In this document: positions 1 through 3,000 of the stretch, in pieces
How the letters are laid out: the number at the start of each line of letters is the position of its first letter
Numbering within the stretch: the stretch's first letter is position 1
Assembly (NCBI RefSeq): GCF_052425735.1
Contig: NC_135759.1
Location: forward strand, 30,442,001 to 30,506,000
Length of the DNA stretch: 64,000 nt
Origin: Oculina patagonica
Taxonomy: Eukaryota
Direction of reading: 5' to 3'
Made by a program: the position numbers and the translations under genes
Notes under the pieces: model-generated
Told to the model about the DNA's origin: nothing
Seen by the model: only the letters and a program-made list of their open reading frames with translations
Database searches by the model: none

Positions 1-3000
1 GTAATTCATCTTGTGAAGGACATCATACGACGGCGATTCCTGTAAATTCAATAGTTGTCTTTAGTGGATGTAAGGGAGGGACTTGAGCGCTTTTTCCATC
101 CCTCCTGTTATTGCTGAAAAACATAAGGCCCGAAAGACCGAACATTTGGAGCAAGAAATGACCCACATGCGCTCCACATGCACTCCTTTTCAAGCAAGAA
201 TGGGCCATCTCCACTCCCCACTCCCCATTTTAATACCACCTCTGGTTCCGCCTCGTATGAAAAACTATCAATTCGATATCAATGTTACCTACCTCGCTTT
301 CAGGCCACATTCTGTCAATCTCGTCTCTCAGTTTGTCTTGCACATGCGTATCAATGGCAAGATGATAACAAACAAAGCCCAGAGTGGTACTAGAAGTTTC
401 ATATCCAGCGAGAAGGAACACGACACTTTGGGCCTGAATATCTTCATTGTCAATTTTCCCTCCTCCTGTTTCCTCTTTTGCATCAAGCATCAACTGCAGC
501 AAATCTTTCCGCTGTGAACAAAAGAAAACAGTAAGCCTGTTTAGCAGCTTTTGCTTACCACGCGACGACGTGGTTTCTGCATCAGTTACAGCATAAGTTC
601 ATTGTCTGGTTACAGACACAAACCTGAAAGTATAAATCTTTATATCACTTAGCCAAAGTAAATTTTTTAAAATTATCGATTCCTGTAGGAGGGTACCAAA
701 GGGGGGTTCGTGATCCCGTTTCACGCACAAGTTTTAACCAAATTCACGTGTCACGTATACTTGAAACAGCAGAATTCACGGATCACGTTTCTTTTCTAAC
801 TACCGTATTTATTCGATTAAGCGCCCTGGGCGCTTATTAAATTTTTGGACCTAAAGAGTGGGCGCTTATTCGAGGTGGGCGCTTATTCGAGGCTGGGCGC
901 TTATTAAATTTTCGCGGTTTTCAGTAAATAGTAAGTTTATATTTGTAACAAAACAATAAATAATAACAAAACGTAAAGATGTACCAAAGCAGAATTTTAA
1001 CTGTTCATTGAAAGTTTCTGTAAAATACTAAGAAACCTCGGTCATGGGGGAAGTCTTCTTAGTAGTACTTAGTCAATTTCAATAATCAATGCTCCTCTTG
1101 TGCACTTCAGTTTTTTTGTGGGGTGGAGGGTGGGCGCTTATTCGAGGCTGGGCGCTTATTAACTTTTCTTACCTTTAGGGTGGGCGCTTATTAGAGGTGG
1201 GCGCTTATTCAAGGTTGGGCGCTTAATCGAATAAATACGGTATTTTTCACGCGTCACGGTCTAATTTTTGCCCTATTTTCACGCGTCCCGGACTAATTTT
1301 TGCCCTTTTCACGTGTCACGCATAAACCCTTTGCCCCCCTCCTGTAGCATTGGCGCCGTGTCGCCGGGCAACCTCGTTCCTGGAACGAGGTCAAAGACTG
1401 GCGGGAAAGTCGGTCTCTACAGCAGTTGAAGGCGAAGAAAGTTCAGTCTCCTCGTTTTAGGCATCAACTGGCAAGGAATTCAAAAGATAAAAAGCTACGA
1501 AACGAAAAGGTATGTTGTTAATGAAAAGATATGCTGTTAAGAAATGTGAAAGGCGTTTTCCTGGGGTATTATAAAGAAGCATCGAAAACCTTAGTGTCAA
1601 AAACAATAACGACGGCGACGCCGCGAGGAAAACATCGATAAAAAATAAGCTTGTATAAATTATCTTAACTAAGCTCATCTAGCATAATTCAACGTGTATA
1701 AGCCTATCCTGGCAGAATAATAATCCACGTGAATATGCAAAACCGAACAAACAAACAAACAAACAAACTGTGTTAAATTCCAAATAAAAACACGAAAAAC
1801 GTGTCGTGGTTCACGGCTAAGAAATATACCAAGTATGGCGCACGTGGTTACCTCCTGAACTGCTCATGTACAAACAGAACTTTTTTCTCACTTTGCACCT
1901 TTTTGGTGTGATCATTTACATCTTGCAGCACTGATTTGAGGAAACTATAATTCGCATATATTATTTTAGTAGAAACAATGTGTAGAATGATTAACTACCA
2001 TGCACTCACGGTGAAGGTATACACATACTTGAACTTTGCTGTTGCCACTTGCTTTTGTCCTTTCAGCGATAATATCTGCTGCTACCACTCCGATTTTGTC
2101 AAAGGCAAAAGTGTCTGGGAGGTACTTGAAAATATGGTCTCCAAATGGTAACAGAACTGCAAAAATGCAAAACTTAAGTTATTGCTATCAAGGGAAAAAA
2201 GTAAAGGCCTGGAAACAGGGCTGATCAAGCTATAAATTAAAATATGAATTGTCCATAATGTTCGCTTGGGAGTTGATAAAATATATGCTATTTACAAGGC
2301 TAAAAAGGTTAAAAGTTATAAAATTACAAAATTAAAACCAAACGTTTTCGGCTGTTTGCCATCATCAGGGTTGAACCCTCATGATGGCAAACAGCCGAAA
2401 AGTGGTTTGGTTTTAATATTTTAATTTTATAACTTTTAACCTTTTTAGCTTTGTAAATAGCAAAATATGAATTGTCGGCATACTTCAACGGTACATTGGT
2501 ATGTTTATGACATGCGACATGATTAGGATCAATTATTGGATTTCTTAAATAATCAAATTGTTCATAATTGCAATCAGTTGATTGCTTACCATAAAATTCT
2601 TGTAATACACTTCCCCCTCCCCCACCCACTCTGTAAAGTATACACACCCGAAATTAGCCCTCCTTAATATAATCAAGAGTTTAATTTTACATGTAGCTTT
2701 TAATAATAAAATTTCTTAATTAAATTCTGATTATAAAGACCCTACTGTAGGGGTTAGTCTAGATACATTAAAATGTACTGTTTAATCATGATACTTTGGG
2801 TTGTTTTTAAATTCTATTACATTATATTTAAGAGGCTTTTGATGACTGTACAACTTCTTGTGTGCAATTCATACTCAGGCTATGTTTAGAGAGTTTTACC
2901 GCATAGTCTTATGTATGCCTAAATTAAAAAAGTTTCAAATAAAATTATAAGCCTGACTTTTTTTGAAATGCAAATTCCTTCCAATAATAATCCCTGCTCC

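Follow-up and report, generated by a model that had tools for sequence, protein, structure and literature searches.

The window, i.e., the whole 64-kb stretch of DNA analysed here, contains a 208-bp insert (2254-2461) bracketed by perfect 15-bp direct repeats, and this insert seemingly lies in an intron of a cytochrome P450 gene. We placed the gene on the minus strand because the exon at 230-502 matches Pfam p450 there. Exon-like minus-strand ORFs, read by eye, are compatible with seven exons upstream of the insert, in agreement with the first-pass annotation, which had located the insert in intron 7 of a minus-strand P450 gene. The only splice-like joint was found in one contig of a possible RNA run, where sequence at or before 2151 continues, after 32 other letters, with sequence at or after 3141, skipping the insert; it may represent a paralogue. 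The features of the locus are as follows.

230-502, minus strand: P450 exon of the host gene, downstream of the insert (match to positions 242-310 of the Pfam p450 profile, E=4.7e-14)
2239-2253, no strand: left copy of the target-site duplication, AAAATATGAATTGTC, 100% identical to 2462-2476
2254-2372, minus strand: long arm, ~119 nt from the 3' terminus of a Penelope-like retroelement (PLE); in BLAST it matches the 3' end of L044, a family copy that bears an ORF
2254-2285, minus strand: tail of the long arm, 32 nt, one-sided; the right arm has no counterpart and the inverted repeat begins at 2286
2336-2372, minus strand (read 2372 to 2336), which is the P450 pre-mRNA strand: intact minimal type I hammerhead, by sequence and descriptor match
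2373, no strand: head-to-head junction base, 1 nt between the arms
2374-2412, plus strand: degenerate hammerhead copy with CUCAUGA (G5C) and with ACGUUU replaced by AGUGGUUU, so that the palindrome is gone and helix III is broken
2374-2461, plus strand: short arm, 88 nt of the PLE 3' end, stopping at about +52, with no tail
2462-2476, no strand: right copy of the target-site duplication, AAAATATGAATTGTC, a perfect 15-nt direct repeat

Numbered from the predicted hammerhead cut, the long arm spans about -36 to +82. The insert had been described at first pass as a fold-back element that folds into a hairpin of ~87 bp. Inverted arms are indeed present, as an outer pair (2286-2343/2405-2462, 95% identity) and an inner pair (2345-2372/2374-2401, 96% identity) separated by the one base at 2373; compared with each other, the window arms show 91.6% identity across 178 nt. 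The minus-strand RNA is predicted to form a single long hairpin of ~88 bp with an MFE of -115.2 kcal/mol (z = -19.4, 200 shuffles). The fold-back is not symmetric, however, as 2254-2285 is a one-sided extension of 32 nt. The perfect 15-bp target-site duplication claimed earlier needs a similar correction: the repeats are 100% identical, but GTC, with which the left repeat ends, is also what the PLE family has as its own terminal bases (...ATGGAC on the opposite strand), the long arms of the family terminating in ...CATTATGGAC. Because GTC could equally be the terminal GAC of the element, the duplication in the window is 12-15 bp and not a fixed 15.

The empty site is expected as a single AAAATATGAATT[GTC], where the bracketed GTC marks the ambiguous bases. 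No empty-site allele was among the joints listed for the contigs of four runs, and these give no evidence of fixation. The insertion was found in contigs of other samples, one of them under a different species label.

The hammerhead on the minus strand reads AACC-CUGAUGA-U-GGC-AAACA-GCC-GAAA-ACGU-U-U-GGUU. It has a short helix I, a bulged U before helix II and a helix III of 1 bp that the palindromic loop ACGU closes, and its predicted cut falls after UUU, between 2340 and 2339. The catalytic core C3-U-G-A-N-G-A9 plus G12-A-A is present on this strand (CUGAUGA, GAAA) and fails in the plus-strand copy (CUCAUGA). Both the complete type I motif and its degenerate mirror were thus correctly recognized at first pass. 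A custom minimal-hammerhead descriptor, run along the two strands of the 64-kb window, matched this motif and nothing else, and gave no match in 50 mononucleotide shuffles. The same sequence is the commonest hammerhead of the family, with 38 occurrences among the loci examined, some of which overlap one genomic place. The hammerhead search suggested at first pass was positive with our own descriptor but negative with the Rfam hammerhead models, which gave no match at the gathering score in the window nor at E<=10 in 2200-2520. This is expected because the motif has no closed helix III, yet we still count it as a miss. Also counted against the motif are a helix II of only 3 bp and the cleavage triplet UUU. 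As a cleavage triplet, UUU is permitted but weak. A type III register using an upstream GUC was considered and rejected, as it leaves no space for helix I. A miRNA precursor was likewise rejected: MIR8562, MIR8007, mir-3660 and others in Rfam all scored far below the gathering score, and sub-threshold miRNA/sRNA matches of this kind are explained by the fact that any long A/U-rich hairpin yields them.

The further genomic copies anticipated by the first-pass annotation are numerous. At least 84 matches to the insert were found, a lower bound on the size of the family, and an 18-nt marker from the arm has 373 matches, compared with 4 for a control. Elsewhere in the genome, the same arm as in the window terminates ORFs that encode a reverse transcriptase (RT) and a putative GIY-YIG domain. 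The copy L044 consists of two 1,051-nt arms, 100% complementary, both with an ORF bearing YVDD and VVY...YIGET.R...E. Pfam GIY-YIG scores E=0.0047 and 17.6 bits, below its cut-off of 22.6, which we count against our best explanation. The complete ORFs are 779 and 814 aa long and match RVT_1 at 31.1 bits (E=2.5e-7), above its cut-off of 29.6. The nearest Atlas clusters bear RVT_1 and GIY-YIG, which we take as a lead only. The element unit is 2,481 bp. It occurs with a direct pseudo-LTR of ~541-548 bp in L060 (period 2,481 bp) and in inverted pairs in L044, L055, L056, L058 and L059. Within the unit, the hammerhead is located 34 nt past the stop codon and ~77-80 nt upstream of the next ATG; the ORF of L060 starts at 3627, within the tail, and in complete elements the ORF ATG lies in ...CATTATGGAC. 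Some copies have inverted arms that are 100% identical up to 2.5 kb, and the ORFs are uninterrupted, for which reasons the PLE family looks recently active. Judged by sequence, the derivation of the insert from a PLE, with a hammerhead of PLE type, is right.

Three diverged PLE families in this genome have the hammerhead; their ORFs share 50-69% identity between families. The core (CUGAUGA, GAAA) and the ACGU are invariant in 10 sequences from the 3 families, and compensatory pairs are seen in helix II (GGC/GCC, GAC/GUC, GAUC/GAUC) and, as a change from C-G to U-A, in helix I. Paired cells amount to 92.8%, against 8-46% with slid partners, and 3 pairs are altered on both sides. With three lineages only, covariation lends modest support to the predicted helices I and II. 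Helix III and the cut site read A-[ACGU]-U, followed by U in the window family or C in family C. The Penelope origin proposed at first pass is in line with this covariation across three PLE families and with the RT and putative GIY-YIG ORFs that the arm terminates.

In the metazoan PLEs studied by Cervera & De la Pena (2014), the minimal hammerheads have a helix II of 6-8 bp; motifs on opposite strands were noted there at distances of 100-700 bp, and dual minimal hammerheads on opposite strands were seen in S. mansoni PLE remnants (PMC4209133). The motif in the window resembles the published ones in its type I topology, its helix I of 4 bp and its one-pair helix III with a palindromic 4-nt loop, so that a dimer would be needed. 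It differs from them in a helix II of 3-4 bp, in the distance of 1 nt between the window motifs, and in the triplet, which is UUU in the window family and UUC in a sister family. A type I hammerhead whose palindromic helix III requires a nearby second copy, in a unit of small size, would also fit a retrozyme-like element, i.e., a hammerhead-bearing repeat that gives circular RNA. Metazoan retrozymes are tandem direct repeats. The window motifs, in contrast, are on opposite strands, 1 nt apart, with only one of them intact, and the arm is contiguous with the PLE ORF in longer copies, so we consider a retrozyme hardly credible here and keep to a PLE origin.

The fold-backs of the family follow a common pattern. 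In 25 of the 28 insertions examined, one arm reaches the reference end (+78/79, which becomes +81/82 once the 3 terminal bases left out of the reference arm are added) and the other stops at +51 to +66 from the cut; the same one-tail asymmetry is found in 5 long copies, two of which are the same insertion fetched twice. Tails are 24-32 nt long, and target duplications of 12-15 nt (mode 12) were found in 19 of 25 insertions. These data bear on the possibility that the insert is a MITE, i.e., that a cut-and-paste DNA transposon, one with long terminal inverted repeats, gave rise to it by deletion. Like MITEs and fold-back DNA transposons, the insert forms a hairpin, is small, multi-copy and intronic, and is flanked by direct repeats, and Rfam yields only generic sub-threshold hairpin/miRNA-like matches. 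Its arms, however, come from the 3' end of an RT-encoding retroelement unit which occurs with direct repeats too; the outer ends are systematically unequal owing to the tail, the inner ends differ from copy to copy, and the duplication, at ~12-15 bp, is variable in length. We give the MITE reading practically no weight.

The central junctions bear on how such insertions arise. Fold-backs with arms 98-100% identical to the L044 3' end have differing central junctions and fillers (L006, L010, L013, L017, L027 and L030), and because near-identical young copies differ in this way, we regard each fold-back as a separate insertion event, doubly 5'-truncated, of the 3' end of its parent. The earlier suggestion of a distinct non-autonomous unit is not upheld by this observation. 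Such a unit would be a self-propagating mini-retroelement, its ~200-bp hairpin being transcribed, recognised by the PLE enzyme via hammerhead and tail, and copied whole. Short fold-backs do account for much of the family (of 27 marker pairs, 16 are <170 bp apart), the arm 5' ends at -32/-33 are such as a discrete short template would produce, and a short 3' RNA module suffices for a PLE enzyme in vitro (PMC11167929). Copying as a unit, however, would pass the junction on, which the variable junctions and fillers do not reflect; the sizes form a continuum, all from 49 to 167 bp being represented, and the window junction (-36/-36 plus 1 nt) is unique among the copies examined. A self-propagating unit is therefore improbable.

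The insert is very probably a dead-on-arrival PLE insertion made of two head-to-head 5'-truncated copies of the 3' end. In our model, the PLE nuclease would nick the two strands of the P450 intron at an AT-rich site, with a spacing of about 12-15 bp, and both nicks would prime reverse transcription on PLE RNA. A distal RT start would give the tailed arm 2254-2372 on the minus strand and a proximal start the tailless arm 2374-2461; both cDNAs would halt on reaching the hammerhead's 5' edge, to be joined head to head. The hammerheads would be passengers, being part of the PLE terminal repeat.

Evgen'ev and Arkhipova in 2005 and Arkhipova in 2006 reportedly described PLE insertions in which a 5'-truncated copy stands inverted and a tail of 30-40 bp is present on one side. 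An inverted 5'-truncated copy with a tail at one end is the standard architecture of PLE insertions (Craig et al. 2021, PMC8557442), the tail being described both there and in PMC11167929. What we observe is like the published insertions in the parent ORF (RT with a putative C-terminal GIY-YIG), the direct or inverted pseudo-LTRs, the heavy 5' truncation, the tail at one end, the hammerhead in the terminal repeat and the AT-rich or microsatellite targets. It is unlike them in that the window copies are cut to 119 + 88 nt, i.e., to hammerhead and terminus only, in that the tail measures 24-32 nt and in that the ORF start codon is inside the tail. The insert is very probably a known kind of insertion, neither a new mobile element nor a ribozyme switch.

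The closest biochemical parallel is PAc (Poseidon of the lizard Anolis carolinensis; Frangieh et al. 2024), which in vitro uses two RT start sites and extends both target strands (PMC11167929). By analogy with this lizard PLE (PMC11167929), we infer two-strand priming and two RT start sites for the window family. The insertions here end at two adjacent internal sites, with the tail as the stretch between them, an AT-rich cleavage preference would be shared, and both-strand extension fits the head-to-head pairs. The two systems are different in their layout: in PAc the hammerhead contains the ORF start, and RT initiates 111-118 nt downstream of it, within the ORF (PMC11167929), whereas here the cut is ~77 nt upstream of the ATG, and of the two insertion ends one precedes the ATG by ~20 nt and the other follows it by ~3 nt. 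Twin priming of L1/LINE elements also yields two cDNAs from the two strands of one target, head to head, with a target duplication; L1, however, inverts one continuous sequence, with no doubled 3' end, no tail asymmetry and no ribozyme.

A function for the host gene is a separate question. The host might have co-opted the insert in one of two ways: the P450 pre-mRNA could contain a switch that cleaves itself conditionally, or the hairpin could give rise to small RNAs directed against the PLE family. In its favor, the pre-mRNA strand bears the intact hammerhead and the opposite strand the mutated one, the near-perfect duplex of ~88 bp is long enough for a dsRNA substrate, and the insertion is present in the other samples' contigs mentioned above, including the one with a different species label. 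The predicted energies speak against a switch. The hammerhead fold is at about -4 kcal/mol as a monomer and -13.1 kcal/mol as a dimer, and would be outcompeted by the full hairpin at -115 kcal/mol. Published single PLE minimal hammerheads gave no detectable cleavage, and dimers little (PMC4209133). The arms have diverged by 8% with core positions hit, matching neutral decay, and hundreds of similar insertions exist elsewhere. Co-option is highly improbable in our view, and none of the results lends support to conditional cleavage of the P450 transcript. The first-pass annotation had noted that the adjacent antisense copy could keep the ribozyme inactive, and the energies agree with this: because the -115 kcal/mol hairpin outweighs hammerhead folds of -4 to -13 kcal/mol, the ribozyme in the P450 pre-mRNA is most likely inert, held in the modelled ~88-bp duplex by the other arm's antisense sequence. 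On this view, what looked like a pair of back-to-back ribozymes in the P450 intron is ordinary retroelement debris, most likely with no effect on the gene.

The value of the locus is rather in its family, which offers a clean natural data set with a near-universal one-tail rule, a duplication of ~12 bp and hammerhead covariation in sister families. What was reported in vitro for the lizard PLE, i.e., two RT start sites and both-strand extension, fits these patterns in the genome. One feature is left unexplained, i.e., a hot spot of arm 5' ends at the ribozyme edge. The ends cluster at -32/-33, which is the 5' edge of the hammerhead and the first base of helix I; simple random 5' truncation does not account for this, and we count it against our best explanation. 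The ribozyme cut site (+1) is not preferred as an arm end. A stable RNA hairpin abutting -33 and able to stall RT was sought and none was found, and position -33 has no AG and hence no 3' splice site such as the Penelope element of D. virilis is said to have at a comparable position. It is conceivable, though rather doubtful, that the PLE family makes or prefers a discrete template RNA of ~115 nt starting exactly at the ribozyme. The -32/-33 end might then stem from a transcription start or processing at ...UUCA|ACC, or from a strong stop of RT. If so, the ~200-bp fold-backs would be "full-length" double copies of a mini-RNA made by an enzyme priming on both target strands, and the genomic fossils would record an undescribed step of PLE replication in which the hammerhead module is the 5' boundary of the template.

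The 15-nt sequence AAAATATGAATTGTC is perfectly duplicated at 2239-2253 and 2462-2476 and brackets a 208-bp insert (2254-2461), whose parts are as follows.

Parts of the insert
2254-2285, unpaired left extension with no partner on the right side
2286-2343/2405-2462, outer inverted arms, 95% complementary
2345-2372/2374-2401, inner inverted arms, 96% complementary
2373, central single base between the inverted arms
2372->2336, minus strand, hammerhead, AACC CUGAUGA U GGC AAACA GCC GAAA ACGU U U GGUU
2374-2412, plus strand, mirror copy of the hammerhead, CUCAUGA in place of CUGAUGA, ACGU palindrome lost

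The fold-back between perfect direct repeats that the first-pass annotation described is thus present, with 15-nt repeats and inverted arms of 95% and 96%. RNA folding of the minus strand (host-gene sense) of the 2239-2476 region predicted a single hairpin of ~88 bp with an MFE of -115.2 kcal/mol vs -35.4 +/- 4.1 in 200 shuffles (z = -19.4). The target duplication of the window copy is 12 nt (AAAATATGAATT) plus GTC, three letters with which the element itself also ends. The two arms show 91.6% mutual identity, and the copy shares 79-85% identity with other genomic copies; judged by sequence, it is a member of an older subfamily.

Our own hammerhead descriptor (CUGANGA box, optional bulge, helix II of at least 3 bp, GAAA, U-H, helix I of at least 3 bp) gave a single match, 2372->2336, when both strands of the 64-kb window were scanned, and none in 50 mononucleotide shuffles. 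Sequence and descriptor therefore agree with the earlier description of a complete minimal hammerhead on the minus strand and a degenerate plus-strand copy, whose core-position decay is compatible with neutral drift. The Rfam hammerhead models gave no match to the motif at the gathering score or at E<=10; the sole Rfam matches were sub-threshold ones of the whole hairpin to miRNA/sRNA hairpin models.

There are at least 84 matches to the insert in the 529-Mb genome, and an 18-nt arm marker occurs 373 times vs 4 for its reversed control. Copies take two forms, i.e., ~200-bp fold-backs and single arms (query 1-122) paired in inverted orientation, the latter enclosing 0.3-2 kb of internal DNA. 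At one genomic locus, L044, two arms of 1,051 nt are 100% complementary, each with a 335-aa open frame in which YVDD, an RT motif, and a block resembling GIY-YIG, VVYKGDCSCGVDYIGETVRNL, can be read (Pfam GIY-YIG E=0.0047, below the cut-off). Searching the genome with the L044 protein found uninterrupted frames up to 815 aa, and ORFs beginning with ATG reach 779 and 814 aa; several in the range of 779-814 aa are uninterrupted. The 814-aa one passes Pfam RVT_1, and the ESM-Atlas clusters closest to it unite RVT_1 with GIY-YIG, which we consider a lead only. Locus L060 contains a direct pseudo-LTR of about 541-548 bp that recurs with a 2,481-bp period, and head-to-head pairs of the element occur at L058, L059, L055, L056, and L053/54.

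The window element's arm corresponds to the terminal ~115 nt of this 2,481-bp-period unit, in which the stop codon is followed by 34 nt, the hammerhead, ~80 nt and finally ...CATTATGGAC. The start codon of the next unit's ORF is the ATG within this final block, in the unit's last six bases, ~77 nt downstream of the predicted ribozyme cut; therefore, the tail, a one-sided stretch of 24-32 nt on the long arm only, carries the ORF start codon. Leader and hammerhead lie upstream of the ORF only in the tandem/pseudo-LTR arrangement. EN+ Penelope-like elements (PLEs) are defined by the combination of RT and C-terminal GIY-YIG in one ORF, direct or inverted pseudo-LTRs and a hammerhead in the repeat (PMC8557442, PMC4209133). 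The proposed Penelope origin is confirmed, the arm being the end of an RT-ORF unit with pseudo-LTRs and a hammerhead, and the family appears to have been recently active in this genome.

Sites in the parent PLE family
L060:3622-3632 and 6103-6113; L058:6270-6276, terminal ATG
L044:3120-5271, inverted pair, 100% identical arms of 1,051 nt
L058:3814-9025, inverted pair, 100% identical arms of 2,486 nt
L059:3644-8199, inverted pair, 100% identical arms of 1,979 nt

One inverted PLE insertion has a perfect 134-bp tandem duplication in its internal region (L043:3377-3644).

Hammerhead conservation within the family is weak as proof because the copies are young. A hammerhead was found at the same position in two further PLE families of the genome, whose ORFs are 50-69% identical.

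Hammerheads of the further families
Family B, ..ACU CUGAUGA U GAUC GAACA GAUC GAAA ACGUUU AG..
Family C, AACC CUGAUGA U GAC AACAA GUC GAAA ACGUUC GGUU

Across an alignment of 10 hammerhead sequences neither the core nor the bulged U nor ACGU varies; standard pairs fill 92.8% of the pair cells vs 8-46% after sliding the partners, and two-sided changes occur at three pairs (helix II, G-C/A-U and C-G/U-A; helix I, C-G/U-A). In the metazoan PLE minimal hammerhead, helix I spans 4-5 bp, helix II has an unpaired base at its 5' end, and helix III is reduced to a palindrome, so that a dimer is needed (PMC4209133). The insert family's motif matches this architecture except in helix II, which at only 3-4 bp in the Oculina families is shorter than published. 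The same-place motif in three PLE families, the covariation and the published architecture together confirm a Penelope-type hammerhead motif. Please note that single motifs of this kind are reported to show no detectable cleavage and dimers to cleave poorly, and that truncated PLEs have been noted to carry pairs of motifs lying 100-700 bp from each other on opposite strands (PMC4209133).

The insert had been proposed to be a miniature non-autonomous element, and this part was not supported. In the fold-backs L006, L010, L013, L017, L027, and L030 the arms match the 3' end of L044, which bears an ORF, at 98-100% identity, and their centres, in nt relative to the predicted cut, are -32/-32 (no filler), -28/-34, -32/-38, -27/-32, -35/-29, and -32/-19, respectively; that of L008 is -32/-32 with a 12-nt filler. 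Genome-wide junction-pattern searches found equally varied centres, and the distances between paired markers cover the whole range from 49 to 167 bp. Were the hairpin copied as a unit, its junction would be passed on unchanged; the fold-backs therefore arose independently of one another, and the differing centres and spacings speak against a replicating non-autonomous unit. A DNA-transposon (MITE) reading was rejected as well. Insertions of the kind seen here are well described, and the insert adds one more example.

The outer ends, with arms counted from the predicted cut, are more regular. In 25 of the 28 insertions examined one arm reaches the unit's end (+81/82, equal to +78/79 on our reference arm, which was cut 3 nt short) and the other ends at +51 to +66, most commonly +58/59; five long copies show the same one-arm-to-end pattern, two of them being one insertion fetched twice. 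Such a tail has been traced in vitro to two adjacent internal RT start sites; the enzyme concerned both cleaves and extends the two strands of the target (PMC11167929). Target duplications are AT-rich and 12-15 nt long in 19 of 25 insertions (mode 12), and some target sites are (ATA)n. Two insertions, L026:172-371 and L033:2573-3192, lie within (ATA)n/(TAA)n microsatellites, so their duplications cannot be delimited; they fit the reported PLE bias to AT-rich/microsatellite targets.

Among short fold-backs, a sample biased towards the query, all 35 arms start between -19 and -38 and 13 exactly at -32; -32/-33 is the first base of helix I (clustering seen in fold-backs L006-L030 and, in the genome G000, at C8:1122467, C9:15110701, and C4:52621850). 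A marker census, which is independent of the arm 5' end, placed 16 of 27 inverted pairs 49-167 bp apart, seven of them at 138-167 bp (with both arms at -32 the distance would be 150 bp), and 11 at 392-3,000 bp, with none of the 27 at 168-391 bp. In junction searches the end ACCC/AACCC recurs beside varied fillers or beside a partner arm cut at -21 to -28. The 5' ends of long insertions are scattered. No stable RNA hairpin abutting -33 was found, a splice acceptor at -33 is absent, and the ribozyme cut site is not favoured as the arm end. The clustering could be explained by transcription starting, RNA being processed or the RT stopping strongly at the hammerhead 5' edge, and we regard this hot spot as a modest lead on the PLE mechanism.

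The host P450 gene is read from the following minus-strand segments.

Segments of the host gene
230-502, minus strand, P450 exon (Pfam p450 E=4.7e-14, profile positions 242-310)
~8750-8899, 7612-7782, 6483-6530, 6074-6229, 4480-4620, 3680-3871, 3001-3234, minus strand, exon-like ORFs, by eye

The seven exon-like ORFs, read by eye, resemble CYP3-type exons 1-7 and lie before the element, which places it in the next intron, consistent with the earlier assignment to intron 7. In one contig, from a possibly-RNA run, <=2151 is joined to >=3141 with the element left out; given its mismatches and 32 unmatched letters, this contig may derive from a paralogue. Both insert/flank junctions are spanned by DNA-run contigs (X16: 1340-2325 and 2420-2660), which shows that other samples carry the insertion too. 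Elsewhere in this P450 gene region, 680 is followed immediately by 1340 in DNA contigs from two other samples; the intervening 681-1339 (core ~770-1320), which this assembly contains and those contigs lack, is a high-copy repeat of enormous summed depth and likely an insertion polymorphism.

The 2372-2336 hammerhead folds at -4.1 kcal/mol as a monomer and -13.1 kcal/mol as a dimeric double hammerhead, vs -115 kcal/mol when paired with the other arm's antisense as a hairpin. From these energies it is reasonable that the antisense copy would hold the ribozyme inactive in the host transcript, as had been suggested; the accompanying suggestion of a conditional ribozyme is not supported. We infer that such sequestration would be a trivial outcome of the insertion geometry, with no sign of regulation.

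A second fold-back in the window (30753-31011) has the same design and a sequence unrelated to the insert, with a ~12-nt duplication (TTAAAACATTCT), a ~35-nt one-sided extension on the left arm, and a GC-rich centre; a scan with our descriptor gave no canonical hammerhead. This fold-back is multi-copy (94 matches), occurring among others as single long arms (query 1-112) and as short arms (157-236), and two of the long arms, 2,616 bp from each other, point the same way (G000 C4:42523658 / C4:42526274). It is probably a doubly truncated stub of another PLE family.
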